Assembly: GCA_004431415.1 (NCBI GenBank)
Contig: QPMI01000412.1
Coordinates: 71,197-135,196, forward strand
Source: Cyanophora paradoxa CCMP329
Taxonomy: Eukaryota; Plantae; Glaucophyta
DNA length: 64,000 nucleotides
Direction of reading: 5' to 3'
Part shown: in pieces, positions 34,799 to 43,188 of the stretch
Numbering within the stretch: position 1 is the stretch's first letter
Layout: the number at the start of each line of letters is the position of its first letter
Notes under the pieces: generated by a model
What the model saw: only the letters and a program-made list of their open reading frames with translations
Database searches by the model: none
Told to the model about the DNA's origin: nothing
Made by a program: the position numbers and the translations under genes

Positions 34799-36349
34799 CT
34801 AGTGGGAGTTCGGGGTGATCTCCGAGATCTTCACCCACCTGTGCTCGGCGGCGGACCTGACGCGCGGAGGAGCAATTAGGGAGCGGCTCGGCAAGAGAGG
34901 GATCTAGAGCAGCGCACTTGGCGGCGGCCATAGCCATGACGAGGGCCTTGCGGCCGTCGTCGCCAGAGCACTCGACGGGGGCGTCCTTCACGAGGCTGTT
35001 GAGGAACGAAATCGTCTCGTTCTTGTACGCCTCCGTGTACCTTCGCGCGGCACCGTCAGCCGCGGCCTGGCGCGCGGCGGGCTGTGTGCGGCCCGTACCG
35101 ATCCATGAAGAAGTTCAGGGGCAGGTCGCGCTTGAGCTTGTCCGCGCCCCAGTGGTGCACGTTGCTGGCGAAGTTGTTGTCCGACATGAGGGCGCCCGCA
35201 GTGCCGAACACCTCCGCGCGCTGGTCGTAGCCGTAGACCGCCTTGCGGCAGTTGTCGACGGTGACGGTCGCGCCGTTCTCGAAGCGGATGGTCGTCAGCG
35301 CAGTGTCGAAGCACAGCGGCGCTGCGGGCGCCGGGTCAGCGGGAGAGAAATGGAAAAGAAAGGAAACGCGGCTAGAGAGCGTATGCGAGAGCGCACCCGC
35401 GAGATCCTTGATGCGCGGGTCAACCAGGTTGCTAGCGACAGCCATGATCTCAACAGGCTCGCTGCCGGTCAGGAAGCGGGACATATCGAAGTCGTGGATC
35501 GCCTAGCGCAAACAAGCATTAGCTAAGGAACCCAAGTGACGCGCGCGGGGACCAGGAGGGACTCGATTCGCGCGCACCATGTCCTTGAAGATGCCACCCG
35601 ACTGCATGGTGTACTCGACCGGCGGCGGGCCCGGGTCGCGCGAGGTAAGACGAACGCTAATGACATTGCCAGCCTCGCCGGCGACGACGCCCTTCTTGAT
35701 CCTGCGGTCGACGCAAACTCAATCACGTTATGACCTGCAGCTGACTAGAAACGCGCTGGCGCGGACAGCCGCGTAACCGCCGTTTTCGCGATGTACGTAC
35801 CGAGCGAAGTTCGGGTCGAAACGGCGCTGGAACGCGAGGAAGAGCTTAACGCCGCACTGCTTGACGACACCGAGGGCCTCGTCGACACCAGCAAGATCGG
35901 TCGCGATGGGCTTCTCGACGAACTAAAGTGGCACGGGAATGTTAGAATGACCACGAAAACGCGCGAGGACAGCCCGAGCGGCGCGCTTAGCCCGGACCCA
36001 AACATGTATGCGGCGCGCAGGCTTACCAGGTGCTTGCCCTTCTGGGCAGCCTCCTTGATAATCTGGGCGTGGGTGTCCGAAGGCGAGCAAACCCAGACCG
36101 CCTTGATGGACGGGTCGTTTAGGATCTCCTTGTAATCAGTCGTGTACTTGGGGATGCGGAAGTCCTCTGCAAGCTTCTTGCACGCGGCCTCGATGACATC
36201 GCTGACGACGGCGAGATCCGCGAACGGCACGGCGGCCAGCGTCTCGGCGTGGACGCGGCCAATGCGGCCAGCGCCAATCAAGCCGACCTTGATGCCTGCC
36301 GACGCTCGTCAACGCGCGCAGACGACGGGCCAGGCATCGGCGCACTCAT
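34799..36349 (-). CDS. iolG: myo-inositol 2-dehydrogenase (Gfo/Idh/MocA family, bacterial IolG type), multi-exon
   Basis: MSIKVGLIGAGRIGRVHAE, EKPIA, FQRRFDPNF, TSRDPGPPP, SGGIFKDMAIHDFDMSRFL, VDNCRKAVYGYDQRAEVFG, FFMDRYTEAY. Confidence 0.93.
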
Positions 36350-36736
36350 GGCTGCTTGCGGGGCGGTCTGGGGCTGGGGCTGAACGGAGTTGACAGGCAC
36401 GCCTGGGGTACGTTGCTCGCCGGCCCGCTTGGGTTCCTCGCTGGCTGCCCCTTCTAGCTTCCCTCCTGCAGAAGGGGAGCAACCCATCTGGCGCGCGGAA
36501 GCCGCGGCCAGAGCACGCGAAAGCTGACGTGCAATGCGTCGGCCGGAGGGGGGTTGCGCAAAATCCTCACGCCCGTAACGTCACGTGCGTCAACAGCGCG
36601 CGCGAGCGGCTGCGGCTACTGGTAGTAGCTACGGAGCACGATTCTGCTGCATTGCGACATCGCCTGCCGCAGCGTCGGCCGAGGCGCGCTCACAGCGGTT
36701 ATGCGAGCGCTAGCGCTACTGGAGCCCGATCGGGGT

Positions 36737-39700
36737 TCAGGTGTAGGCCTCGTAGTTGGCGGTGTCGGTGCGGAGTGCGTAGCAGGAAATGGAGTCGAAG
36801 AGCCATTTGTAGGTGACGATGTCCGCGGCCTCGAGCAGCTCCCGGGCGCCGGGCGGCAGGACGAAGAGACGCAGCAGCTCCTCGATGTCCACGACGCCCT
36901 CGGCCCGCACCGTCTCCGGCGACCGCACGACGTACGCGGCCCGCGCGGCAGTCGGCTCCAGGTCGCCTGCGGCGTCGGCGGCTCCGGGGATGCCTGCGCG
37001 CCGCAGGACGGTGCCGCCGGCGGCCTCGATCAGGTCGACGAGGTCGTTCCGCGTGGGGCCCCCGTCGTTGAACTCGCCCCACAGGCCGAACAGCAGCCCG
37101 GCGAAGAGCCGCGGCGCCTGCGCCCGGCGTCAGGCGGGCACGGAGGCGGCGGCGGCGAGGAACGGACTTCGGCGACGCGGTCGGCGCGGGAGCGGGCAGG
37201 CGCGTCGGTCCGCTGCTTGACGCTGTCGCCCAGCAGCTGGTAGCGCTCCTCGGGCTTCCAACAGTTTGCCTGGAGGCTCGCGCGGACCCCTGCGGCGCAG
37301 CGCCGAAATCAGCGCGAAGCGCTGGGGGGGGCGGGGCGGGGCGCGGATGGGGCGCACAGCCTTCGGATATGACCCAGGCGCCGCGGGCGACTCCAGCGAG
37401 GTACTTGACAGTGCGCTTGCAGAGGCCGCCGAGCGTCTCGCGCGCCACCACGTGCGTCACCTCCTCGCTCCACGCCTCCGTCAGCTTCGCCCCGCCCAGC
37501 TTCGCCACCGCCCGCCCCAGCTCGCTCTGACGGCCCGTGAGCGGGCGAGGGAGGGGAGAGGGGTGCGCGCCCGGGGCGAGAGCACCCTCTGGCTCTCGTT
37601 CAGGCCGCTGGCGAGGATGACGCGCGTGACCGGCACCGGGTCGGCTTCCTTCCGGCCCGAGCGCCGCCCTGTGCGCGCGACATGTGTTGAGAACGGAATG
37701 AATGCATGTAAGAATGCCGAGGAGTACGCACCCGTGGAGGGGCGGGGTGCAGGGCTGGAGGATGATGACGCGGGGGAGGGGGCAGGGCGAGGCGCAGAGC
37801 TAGATGCCGAAGGCGTCGCCGGCGGGGGAGGGCGGAAGCTAGGGCCAGGGGTGGACGAGGGTGACCGAAGGGGCGTCGGCTGGGACTTCTGGGAAGCCGA
37901 AGGAGGGCGGGGTGCGGGGGCGGAGAAGCGGGCAGAGGCCGGCGGGCTCGCGGCGGGGGTCTTCTGCTGCTTTCGGCTGCTGGAGGGGGCTGGGGCGCTG
38001 GCGCGGCGCGGGGTCGGTGCCGCGGAGCTGCAGCAGGAGCCGGCCTCGCTGCCGCTGCCGTCTTCGGCGGAGCTCCGCTGCGAGGGGCGCCGCCTCCCGC
38101 TCTCCTTGGCCTGCAGGCGCTCCACCTCTTGCTTGCCCAGCCCGCGGTGCTTCGGGCACTCAAGCACGTGCTCCGTCTGCGCTCGCGTTCGCCGGGGTCG
38201 CGGCAAGGGACGCGGGGGGACGGCGCTCACCTCGTACAAGGTGGTGCCGTCGTTCTGCTTGACGAGCTCGCGGGCGCACTGCAAGTGGAACTGCCGCTTG
38301 CACCGGCGGAGGAGGCAGCCGATGGCCGCCCCGCCCTCCCCGCACTTCTTGTAGCTGCACTTCTGCAGCGGGGCATGAGGGCCGACCGCGCGGGGGGACG
38401 GGGCGGGCGCACCAGGTTACGGGAGCGCCACCACTCTTCGTGGAGGTTAATGTACCCTCCGGTGCCGTCCTCCATCACGTCCGGGGCCCAGTCCGCGCAT
38501 TGCTCGTGCACGTAGAGGCCCCGGACCGTCCCCTGCGGACCGCCGTCAGCAGAAGGCCGGGGTAGCAGTGGGGCGGCGGCGCGCCTTCTTCTGCCGGTTG
38601 GGGATCGCGTAGGGGCCGATGCCGTCGCCGCAGGGGTCCGCCGGCTCGCCCTCCCGCGGGAGCTGCCGGTTGCAGAAGCCGCACTTCTTCACGATCTTGG
38701 GGGTCGCCCGGCCGGGGCTCTGCCGGCCCAGCCGCGGGTCGGCGGGGACCGTCTCTTCGTCCTGCAGGTCCTCGTCGCTGTGGACCGAGTCGCTCAGGCC
38801 GCCGCCGTCGACGCTGGCGAACATGAGGAAGGCGCTCTCGTAGTGCTTGACGGCGCCGGCCCAGCACGCCTCCGGGCAGGCGTCGAAGCGGCGGGTGAAG
38901 CCCTGCTTGCGGAAGAACTTGGTCGCCGTGAGGTCCGCGAAGGTCACCAGCCAGCAGATCCCCTCCTGCCCCGCCTCCTCCCTGCCCCGCCGTTGGCGGG
39001 GGTCGAAGGCGGGGAGGGGCCGCGGGAGGGGCCGGACCGGAGGGCGGTGAGGAGGCGGGAGCCGACACCTCGCTTCTGGATGGCGTCGCTGACGACGAGG
39101 AACGTGATCTCAGCGATGCGGCGCTCCTCCCGCGGCATGGGCTTGTACACCGCCGCCCCCTGCAGCACCCCGCCCGGCCCCACGTCCAGGAGGCTCCGGT
39201 GGAACCTGCGGGGCGGTGAGGCGGGGCGCGGCGGGCCGGCCCCCAGGCGGGGCGCACGGGTCGGCGATGACGCCGTCCACGTAGGGCTTGGACATCTCCG
39301 GGAGGACGGAGATGACGAGTTCGGAGAGCGCGTCGGTGTACTTTATCCTGTCCGCGCCCTGCAGGTCCCCCAGCCGAACGTAGCCCTCCACCGGCACCGG
39401 CGCGAGCGCGAAGGGAGGCACGCCGCCCGCCGGCGAGGCCGAGGAGGAGGCGGGGGCGGAGGCGCGGGAGGTGGTCGAGGCGGTGGCTGTGGGCGGACCG
39501 GCGGACTTCGAGGTCGTGCTGGCGGCTTCTAGGACCTCGCCCCCGCCGGCTCCCGCCTCGATCTTCTTCGGCGTCGCGGAGAAGAGGCCGGGGACGCCGC
39601 ACGGCTGCAGCGGATCCCGCCGGGCCGGCGAGGGCGACAGGCACGCCGCGCCGCTCCGGGCTTTCTTCATGGGCCGCTTGTTCGGCGACTCGTGCGCCGA

Positions 39701-41499
39701 AGGGCCGCCAACGAGCGGCGCGATGTTCTCCTTGTCGGGCAGGTCCCGGGGCGGGTCCCGTGGGCGGGCGGCGTGGGGCGGCGGAACGGGGCGGGCCGGA
39801 ACGAGAGGCGGGGCCGGGGGGCAGGAGAGAGGCCCGCCGAGGGCCTCGATGACGGAGTGGGAGAGGAAGGGGGCGGCGTCGGGGATGGCGCTGCGGACCG
39901 CGGTCCGGATGCTCTCCACCTGCGAAGGCCGCAGCTCTGCGGGTGGGGTCAGCCGAGGGCGCCGCAGGGGAGGCGGGCGGCCCGCACGGTTCGCGATGAT
40001 GTCGGCGCCAGCGTCGACCGCGGCGGCCACAGCCTCGGCAGCCCGCGGTACGTCCTGCGCGCCGCCGAGGGCCGCATCGCGCGCGGCGGCACGGCCGGCC
40101 TCAAAGCCCGAGGGGGCGACCGTTGCGTCTTCGTCCAGATCCATTTCGTGCTGCTCGCCGCCGCCGGCCGGCGCCTCCTCGCCGCTCTGCGGCTCGATGG
40201 CCGCACCGCCGGGGGCCTCCCACGCCGGATCCCATGCTGGCTCCTCTGCAGCCTGCGCTTGCTCGTCCCCGGCGTAAGGATCCTCGAGGCCTGCAGAAAT
40301 GGCTTAGCTGCAGTGTGGCGCACTACTTGAAGGAAGGGGGAAGAAGCACCTCCAGCGGGGGCCTCAGCATACAGCTCGGGCGCAGCGGCCTCGGGATCTG
40401 CCATCTCGATATCTGCCGCCGGCTCGCCCTCGTCGACTCTCCGCAACGGTGATGCAGGTGGCATGAGGGGCCTGGGCGGACGCCGCGTGCTGGGGGAGCG
40501 GGGCCGGCGGCGGGGCGGAGAGGGTATGGAGCAGTTGACGGAGTCGAAGTAGATAGCGTCGGGACGGTGGTAAGGTTGAGCCAAGAGCGCCGACATGGCC
40601 TCCCGCGCTGTCAGCGCTTTCTGCTGTTCGGGCGGGACCGACCCCTCCCCCGGCGACGCGTCTTCGATGTCGTCGACTGTCTCGTGCTGATGCCCGCGGC
40701 GGGCTGCCGGCCGCTCCGGCTGAGCGTGCGGAGCGGGCGCAGGCACGGCTGCTGGAGCGGTCTCTCCTCGCGCTGCTGGAGAATGGCTCTGGCGCGCGTC
40801 TGGCAAGGCCGGCAGCTGCGGGGCGTTGGCCGCCGATGATGGCTTCTGCCGCGCGTGCCGGCGACCGGGCGCATCCTGCGAAGGATCTTCCACATCCTCG
40901 ACCTCGTCTTGATCACGGCCGACGGACAGCCTGTTCAACGAGCTCGGCTCCCCTGATCGGATTCGATCAACTCCGGGTCGAGGCTACTGGGCGATTTTGA
41001 ATGCGCACCGGCGGAGGCTTCCCCTTCCAGCAGTGCGCGGCCTTTGACCACATTCTCGAGGTGCAAGAAGGCGTCCACGAGGTCCCGATAGCGCTGCACG
41101 GCATGGAGGGAGCGGCGATCGAACTCGCCCTTGCAGCTGCGGAAGGGGAATGGGCAAACAGGCATTAGGGATCATACATTCGATCCATTCGAAGTGACGG
41201 CGCACTTCGGGCACTTCAGCTTGTTGCGCTGCAGCGGACACTTCTTGATGCACTCCCTGCGCGGGCCGTCGGGCACGAGAAGAGGGCAGCATTCTATTCC
41301 AGGTGACATCCGCACGCACGCGCAAAAGAAGTGGTTGCAGGGCAAGGCGAGAGGGTCGTCGACGACATCTTGACTGCGGCGGCCGAGCTCGGAAAAAGGC
41401 GCTGGGAGCGGGGAGCGCTCGATCGCACCAGATAGTGCAATGCAATTCCTGTCGGAAACCGTCCAGCGCCCGCTGCAGCGTGGCGTCCTCGGGCTTCAT
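36737..41499 (-). CDS. BRCA1/BARD1-like protein: RING - disordered linker - GCN5-type GNAT acetyltransferase - extended PHD - tandem BRCT
   Basis: RING ELHCTIC..LPCNHFFCAECI..KCPKCK; GNAT IAEITFLVV..QKRGVG..VTFAD..FFRKQGF..VKHYESAFLM; ePHD CGFC..VHEQCADWAP..GAAIGC..CKRQFHLQCA..CPKH; BRCT VTHVVA..RTVKYLAGVARGAWVI..W, PRLFAGL..LIEAAGG..WLFDSIS. Confidence 0.88.
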
Positions 41500-42125: not shown

Positions 42126-43188
42126 TCACTGCTCAGGCCGGATGCCGGGTAGGCCCTGTATCGTGGAGGTGCACTGGAACCATGTCTCGCTCACCCCGCC
42201 GCCCGCGCAATCAGCAGAGACCGCGGCGGCGCTGTCGCCCGCCGGGGCCGCCGGGGACGCAGCGTGGGAAGAGCCGGGCTCGTGGAGCTGGAAGCTGGCG
42301 ACGACGTTGCCGAGGGTGCGGTCGACGTCCTCGCCGTCGTCCAGCCCCGCGCGCAGCACCACCGTCCGCCGCTGCACTGCCGGCGGCCGCAGCGCTCGGC
42401 TCGCCGACATGGAGGGGGGTGCGCTGCTGGAGGGAGGGACGGCAGGGAAGGAGCCGAGGCGGATCTCTACGGGGGTCAGCCGCCTTCGGGTTGTGGCGAC
42501 GGAGAAGTTCTGGCGGGGGAAGAGGTCCGGGGAGCAGGCGGTGGCTGGGGAGAGGAAAAGTACGGCGAGCTTCGTGGCGCCGAGGTCGCGGTGGAAGACG
42601 TCGAGGTCCGCGACGACCAGCGCCCGAATCATGCGGCGGCAGACCTCCCGCGCTCGCTCCAGCTCCGCGGGCTCCGGCGGACGCCGTTCCAATCCGAAGC
42701 CCTGCACGCCGAGGGCGCTCGTGTCCACGGCGCCGTGCTGGCCGCGGAGGCTCCACTCGTTTGCGAACTTGATCACGTACAATTCGCGCGGGCTGACGGG
42801 CGAGCTCCCCATCGAGATCATGACGCTGCTGATGCACGTGTTCGTGGCGAATGCTGCTTCGACGGACTGGAACAGGGATTCCGCGGAGTGCACCAGCTTG
42901 AGCCGGCGCCGAAGCTGGAGGGACGCGCGAGGCCCGCTCTTGCCAGGGATCCCGCCCTCGCCGCAGTCCTGCTGCAGGCACCTCTTGAACTGAGACGCGC
43001 GTCTGCATCAGCACCGGGCCAGGGCGCGCGACGGCCTCGGGGAATGAGCGAAAGCGCACTTCGTCGTATGTGCATGGGATCTGCTGCCGCATAAACAGCA
43101 AGTACTTGATAAGCTCCCGGACCAGGATGCTCGACGTGTAGGCCGAGAGCGGCGTTGGCAGCGGTACATCGAGCGTCCAGCCACCCAT
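42126..43188 (-). CDS. MAD2L1BP: p31comet / MAD2L1-binding protein (HORMA fold), 2 exons
   Basis: LVRELIKYLLFMRQQIP, MGSSPVSPRELY, CRRMIRALV, TKL, FPRQNF, WFQCTSTIQG. Confidence 0.85.

Follow-up and report, generated by a model that had tools for sequence, protein, structure and literature searches.

Proteins of the BRCA1 family are known to ligate ubiquitin and to read phosphorylated motifs, and for acetylation they rely on enzymes of other complexes. Human BRCA1 and BARD1 contain neither an extended PHD (ePHD) nor a histone acetyltransferase (HAT) domain, and their HATs come as separate complexes. In human cells, GCN5 is brought to breaks as a protein of its own and supports both routes of repair (PMC11544116). 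The plant proteins (Arabidopsis At4g21070 and At1g04020/ROW1, with two paralogs per genome) are composed of RING, ePHD and tandem BRCT in this order, the ePHD preceding the BRCT repeats, and they have no acetyltransferase (PMC11014961). The PHD of Arabidopsis BARD1/ROW1 binds H3K4me3, and the protein needs this PHD for its function as a repressor (PMC4316744). The plant-specific Arabidopsis protein BCP2 (At2g41450) combines a GNAT domain with a C-terminal tandem BRCT (PMC9791218), and bcp2 mutants have been reported to be zeocin-sensitive (PMC11014961). Here, we describe a gene from the glaucophyte Cyanophora paradoxa CCMP329 which joins a BRCA1-type RING, a GCN5-type GNAT domain, an ePHD and a tandem BRCT in one open frame. 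It was found in a window of 64,000 nucleotides (nt), positions 71,197 to 135,196 of contig QPMI01000412.1 (assembly GCA_004431415.1), where it occupies positions 36737-41499. This gene and its parts described below lie on the minus strand, and coordinates are those of the window.

The RING-GNAT-ePHD-BRCT gene is real, as first noted in an initial annotation of the window. It runs from the ATG at 41499 to the stop at 36737, has 16 exons with intervening introns 50-69 nt long, and encodes 1301 amino acids (aa) in the order RING, disordered linker, GNAT, ePHD and tandem BRCT. An exhaustive HMMER search with exon 9 identified it as the EukProt protein tig00020560_g11090.t1 (P0001, 1247 aa), which is identical to our model except for 54 aa missing in P0001. 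The public annotation already contains g11090 as one predicted unit, although unnamed. Pfam analysis of P0001 revealed RING (21-60), GNAT (576-660), zf-HC5HC2H (773-858) and two BRCT domains (1014-1086 and 1125-1237), all exceeding the curated cut-offs and in agreement with single-exon searches. All sampled words of the gene stretch were present in 14 DNA data sets, so that an assembly error can be dismissed, although these data sets may come from the source strain.

The RING domain (41049-41478, aa 8-88, exons 1-4) is of the BRCA1 C3HC4 type with both flanking helices. Its top PDB match is BRCA1 (E 1.4e-11), followed by the next family at 1.3e-8. All eight zinc ligands are retained, and I23, K61, R66 and R67 are found opposite BRCA1 I26, K65, K70 and R71; these are the E2-binding, linchpin and acidic-patch positions. 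The RING is followed by a low-complexity linker of ~500 aa (39380-41008, exons 5-7). The ePHD (C2HC pre-PHD and PHD; 38147-38683, aa 786-912, exons 9-12) matches Pfam zf-HC5HC2H with 33.3 bits, above the cut-off. BRCT repeat 1 (37234-37627) contains S1071, G1072, R1116 and K1119, equivalents of the phosphoserine pocket residues S1655, G1656, R1699 and K1702 of BRCA1, whereas repeat 2 (36773-37117) is encoded by exon 16. The BRCT pair matched BARD1 (8e-17) and BRCA1 (8e-15), with MDC1 at 2.5e-3. Thus, the flanking helices, the four RING positions and the BRCT pocket are shared with human BRCA1/BARD1, whereas the Cyanophora protein has no ankyrin repeats. With RING nearest to BRCA1, BRCT pair nearest to BARD1/BRCA1, GNAT nearest to GCN5 and an ePHD of the zf-HC5HC2H type, the BRCA1/BARD1-like identity proposed initially was borne out, and the sequence comparisons point to a Cyanophora member of this family with the plant-type set of RING, ePHD and tandem BRCT. 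In contrast to the plant proteins, which the initial annotation correctly described as lacking a HAT, a GNAT domain is located directly ahead of the ePHD in both Cyanophora paralogs (see below).

The GNAT domain spans 38807-39379 (aa 590-744, exons 7-9). The initial annotation had placed it at about 39350-38810, and the motifs named there (IAEITF, QKRGVG, TFAD, FRKQGF and KHYE..LM) were recovered at aa 660, 673, 699, 709 and 731. The domain shows strong matches only to GCN5/PCAF (E 1e-13 to 1e-16), with other GNAT proteins above 0.02, and shares ~30% sequence identity with GCN5. Glu662 (codon 39109-39111) aligns with residue 75 of 1ygh, which corresponds to the catalytic Glu173 of yeast Gcn5. 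A fold model based on a 16-row alignment had a predicted local distance difference test (pLDDT) score of 88 and template modelling (TM) scores of 0.86-0.89 to GCN5/PCAF structures. Like GCN5/PCAF (KAT2), the domain therefore has a HAT fold, the catalytic Glu and the acetyl-CoA motif A, but it is strongly diverged, and the protein lacks the PCAF N-terminal domain, any sign of an Ada2-binding region after the HAT, and a bromodomain, for which Pfam gave no match in P0001 or in the paralog P0002. The initial annotation stated that GCN5 normally occurs with a bromodomain, but GCN5-type domains without one are not rare and include an ePHD-GNAT-Tudor-knot family, IDM1-like PHD-GNAT clusters and BCP2. 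In the ePHD-GNAT-Tudor-knot proteins and plant IDM1, a PHD-type reader and a GNAT likewise share one chain; however, the PHD is located before and far from the GNAT, and RING and BRCT are absent. P0006, P0018, P0019 and P0020, a separate protist family (Bigelowiella cluster, MMETSP), have the ePHD, GCN5-type GNAT and Tudor-knot composition without a bromodomain, and their GNAT domains form a well-supported clade separate from that of Cyanophora. Another protein, P0009 (479 aa, on an 89-kb ENA contig), has a GCN5-like GNAT with PHD and I-HmuI NUMOD-like domains.

The predicted paralog tig00000903_g5527.t1 (P0002, 932 aa) has the same domain order with a much shorter linker, which indicates that the GNAT fusion is not a gene-model accident. 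The two proteins share 58% identity in the GNAT, the most conserved domain, 52% in the ePHD, 45-47% in the BRCT repeats, 43% in the RING and 19% in the first linker. In an unrooted GNAT tree of 12 rows, from which fragments were excluded and which contains neither an outgroup nor BCP2, the GNATs of the two Cyanophora proteins group together with strong support on a long branch, and deeper forks have no resolution. The pairing indicates a single insertion before gene duplication, and with this composition of the tree the donor of the GNAT cannot be named. Both ends of the GNAT lie inside exons, with no sign of exon shuffling at the present exon boundaries, and its C-terminal half shares exon 9 (38585-38981) with the first ePHD Cys pair, as described initially. 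The paralog RING lacks the first Cys pair, and its similarity begins at the exon-2 boundary of g11090, which may point to an error in its predicted first exon. P0002 has R at the K1702-equivalent, C at the G1656-equivalent and G at the R71-equivalent position. Judging from its sequence, g5527 may be a weaker, BARD1-like partner.

An opposite course of events, in which a BCP2-type protein acquired RING and ePHD and the gene would be a relative of BCP2 and not of BRCA1, was also considered. BCP2 already unites GNAT and tandem BRCT, and among the structure clusters compared with the GNAT model a streptophyte BRCT cluster (201 members), probably the BCP2 family, reached a TM score of 0.84. However, GCN5 clusters fit better (0.90-0.91), the BRCT pair is of the BARD1/BRCA1 type and the RING of the BRCA1 type. 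BCP2 itself has neither RING nor ePHD, which sets the Cyanophora protein apart from it, and phospho-H2A.X is not a predicted ligand of the BCP2 BRCT pair. This origin is the least probable of the explanations considered here; a BCP2-like protein may have been the donor of the GNAT alone.

We propose, with a probability of roughly 60%, that the protein is a BRCA1-type nucleosome ubiquitin ligase with a built-in lysine acetyltransferase that it takes along to damaged chromatin. A fast-evolving GCN5-type GNAT would have been inserted just ahead of the ePHD of a plant-type BRCA1/BARD1 protein before the duplication. The tandem BRCT would bind a phospho-serine motif of a damage-response partner and the ePHD histone H3 or the nucleosome, bringing the protein to damaged chromatin; targeting would thereby fall to ePHD and BRCT instead of a bromodomain and SAGA partners. 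Reportedly, glaucophytes have neither SQEF-type H2A.X nor clear BCP1/BCP4 (PMC11014961), and therefore the BRCT phospho-ligand is probably not H2A.X. The RING is expected to dimerise via its flanking helices, with itself or with the paralog, to dock on the nucleosome acidic patch via R66/R67 and to ubiquitylate H2A. The GNAT, with Glu662 as general base, would acetylate nearby lysines, most likely in the H3 tail, and this acetylation would loosen the chromatin to allow resection and homologous recombination. The fusion would thus hard-wire the GCN5 recruitment step to breaks.

Several points weigh against this proposal, concerning both the GNAT domain and the RNA contigs. The alignment behind the fold model is rich in GCN5 sequences and the model is biased toward GCN5, the branch leading to the GNAT pair is long (>2 changes per site), and the peptide-binding region is altered. 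Because of these changes and the ~30% identity to GCN5, the substrate may not be H3. Enzyme activity, substrate and role in repair are inferred. The long branch and departures from the GCN5 consensus at several positions would also suit a BRCA1-like scaffold whose GNAT is catalytically dead and binds only acetyl-CoA, a histone tail or a partner. This appears improbable, since both Cyanophora paralogs retain Glu662, motif A, Asp702, Tyr733 and the stretch A-x-x-F-F-x-x-Q-G-F.

The RNA evidence is composed of assembled contigs from two studies with at most three samples (the runs being taken to be RNA), and such contigs lose minority splice paths. Among the joints listed for these contigs, which leave out two, 13 of the 15 introns (1-12 and 14) are spliced, all joints having splice-type ends. 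Introns 1-3 of the RING region are spliced in three RNA runs, and intron 4 (40953-41008, in the linker) is also RNA-confirmed. Intron 5 (40291-40349, 59 nt, phase 1, GT-AG) shifts the genomic frame between the RING and GNAT sides, and its splicing joins the linker in frame; the joint is present in the X15 and X18 contigs, as the initial annotation had predicted for the RING exons. That exon structure overlooked intron 6 (39937-39987), an in-frame intron of 51 nt which is RNA-confirmed. The GNAT introns are located at 39206-39257 and 38982-39037, and intron 9 (38533-38584, within the ePHD) is a GC-AG intron with RNA support. Most other introns of the gene have the donor sequence GTGCG.

One X15 contig covers the 5' untranslated region and the RING and reaches about 39762, whereas a second one, from 39738 onward, includes the GNAT, the ePHD and the stop. 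The stretch at about 39739-39760 (~20 nt in the linker, in open frame and with the peak GC content of the gene, 88%) is spanned by none of the listed RNA contigs, and X15 and X18 break there alike, which is a further point against the proposal. The same break in two studies, with an in-frame ATG just beyond it (39670), might reflect two adjacent genes (RING-linker and GNAT-ePHD-BRCT) fused by gene prediction. However, the frame of the RING-side contig stays open and free of stops up to the break, and X18 depth is similar on either side (7.6-8.5). Moreover, RING and BRCT represent two ends of one known family, and the paralog links them with a far shorter linker. Two separate genes are therefore very improbable, and with the 88% GC, the open frame and the matching depths the break is explained most simply as a coverage drop-out.

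The listed contigs also keep intron 13 (37527-37585, 59 nt) and intron 15 (37118-37167, 50 nt), both in X15 and X17 and intron 15 in X18, whereas the neighbouring introns 12 and 14 are spliced. The BRCT1 and BRCT2 frames require the removal of introns 13 and 15, respectively, and retention leads to loss of the BRCT repeats, intron 13 producing a stop after aa 1112, ahead of any complete BRCT. Weak splice sites were rejected as the cause, since splice sites and branch points of both introns are ordinary and score equal to those of the spliced introns. Together with the gap-free alignment of the BRCT pair to BARD1 across both junctions, these ordinary signals argue that introns 13 and 15 are real. 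Retention may reflect biology, overlapping unspliced RNA or a contig effect. X19 has only unspliced pieces over 36705-37732 and nothing upstream, which could be antisense RNA, unprocessed RNA or DNA.

These retained introns are compatible with a genuine fusion that acts mainly in transcriptional or general chromatin control, the usual product being a BRCT-less RING-GNAT-ePHD protein of 1112 aa and the BRCT form minor or made on demand. The predominance of retention in the main contigs despite splice sites as good as the spliced ones, and the PHD-dependent repressor role of Arabidopsis BARD1/ROW1, are in line with this view. However, the two paralogs share conserved BRCT exons, BARD1 aligns gap-free across both junctions, contigs lose minority paths, and X19 is wholly unspliced in this region. 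Taken together, we regard a mainly BRCT-less product as an improbable alternative, although more probable than the other rivals. An extended version of the damaged-chromatin ligase proposal is doubtful, namely that both paralogs are active acetyltransferases, that a self-contained dimer of them marks the same nucleosomes with both ubiquitin and acetyl groups and replaces the gamma-H2A.X/MDC1 route, reported to be missing from glaucophytes (PMC11014961), and that retention of introns 13 and 15 serves as a switch which decides whether a chromatin form lacking the BRCT repeats or a form targeted to damage is made. The initial annotation had suggested checking that RING and GNAT/BRCT share one transcript: 13 of the 15 introns are spliced, while the 20-nt gap is unbridged and introns 13 and 15 are kept. 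A full-length BRCT-bearing mRNA is not yet displayed by the listed RNA contigs, and the joining of RING and BRCT is predicted by the gene model.

In protein searches, the combination of GNAT and ePHD in the g11090 order was found only in the two Cyanophora proteins, and two metagenome scans revealed no relative. P0003 and P0004 were rejected as relatives, being low-complexity chance matches. A word-index search with the BRCT region recovered nothing besides the query itself and is uninformative on distribution; as it missed even the paralog, the searches are weak for diverged relatives, and other glaucophytes may have the fusion. In the part of the Grau-Bove chromatin survey supplements available to us, the only GNAT and BRCT entry is an orthogroup of 11 genes in 9 species. 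No description of a RING-GNAT-ePHD-BRCT layout was found in the literature searched. Thus, the novelty claimed for the architecture stands within these insensitive searches, and the fusion is probably a lineage-restricted variant of the known BRCA1/BARD1 family.

The coding exons are located at 41499-41429, 41373-41320, 41256-41206 and 41136-41009 (exons 1-4), 40952-40350, 40290-39988, 39936-39258 and 39205-39038 (exons 5-8), 38981-38585, 38532-38413, 38362-38231 and 38176-37732 (exons 9-12), and 37668-37586, 37526-37358, 37289-37168 and 37117-36737 (exons 13-16). The official model has an extra intron of 162 nt in exon 5 (40711-40872), which was rejected because its ends are not GT-AG and an X15 contig reads through it. 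The upstream neighbour (42126-43188, minus strand) resembles p31comet/MAD2L1BP, a checkpoint HORMA protein (weak Pfam matches to PF06581, E 0.018 and 0.12), and is located ~630 nt ahead of the BRCA1-like start. The downstream neighbour (about 35000-36345, minus strand) is a Gfo/Idh/MocA oxidoreductase, probably an inositol 2-dehydrogenase. One X15 contig continues from the BRCT exons over a short spacer toward this gene.

The reach of the finding is limited to one species so far, the four domains are all known, and BCP2 provides a precedent for GNAT with BRCT. Nevertheless, the gene extends the plant-type RING-ePHD-BRCT layout to glaucophytes, and the fusion offers one polypeptide for testing the cooperation of H2A ubiquitylation and histone acetylation. 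A natural BRCA1-HAT fusion in two paralogs would suggest that acetylation is tightly linked to the action of BRCA1.

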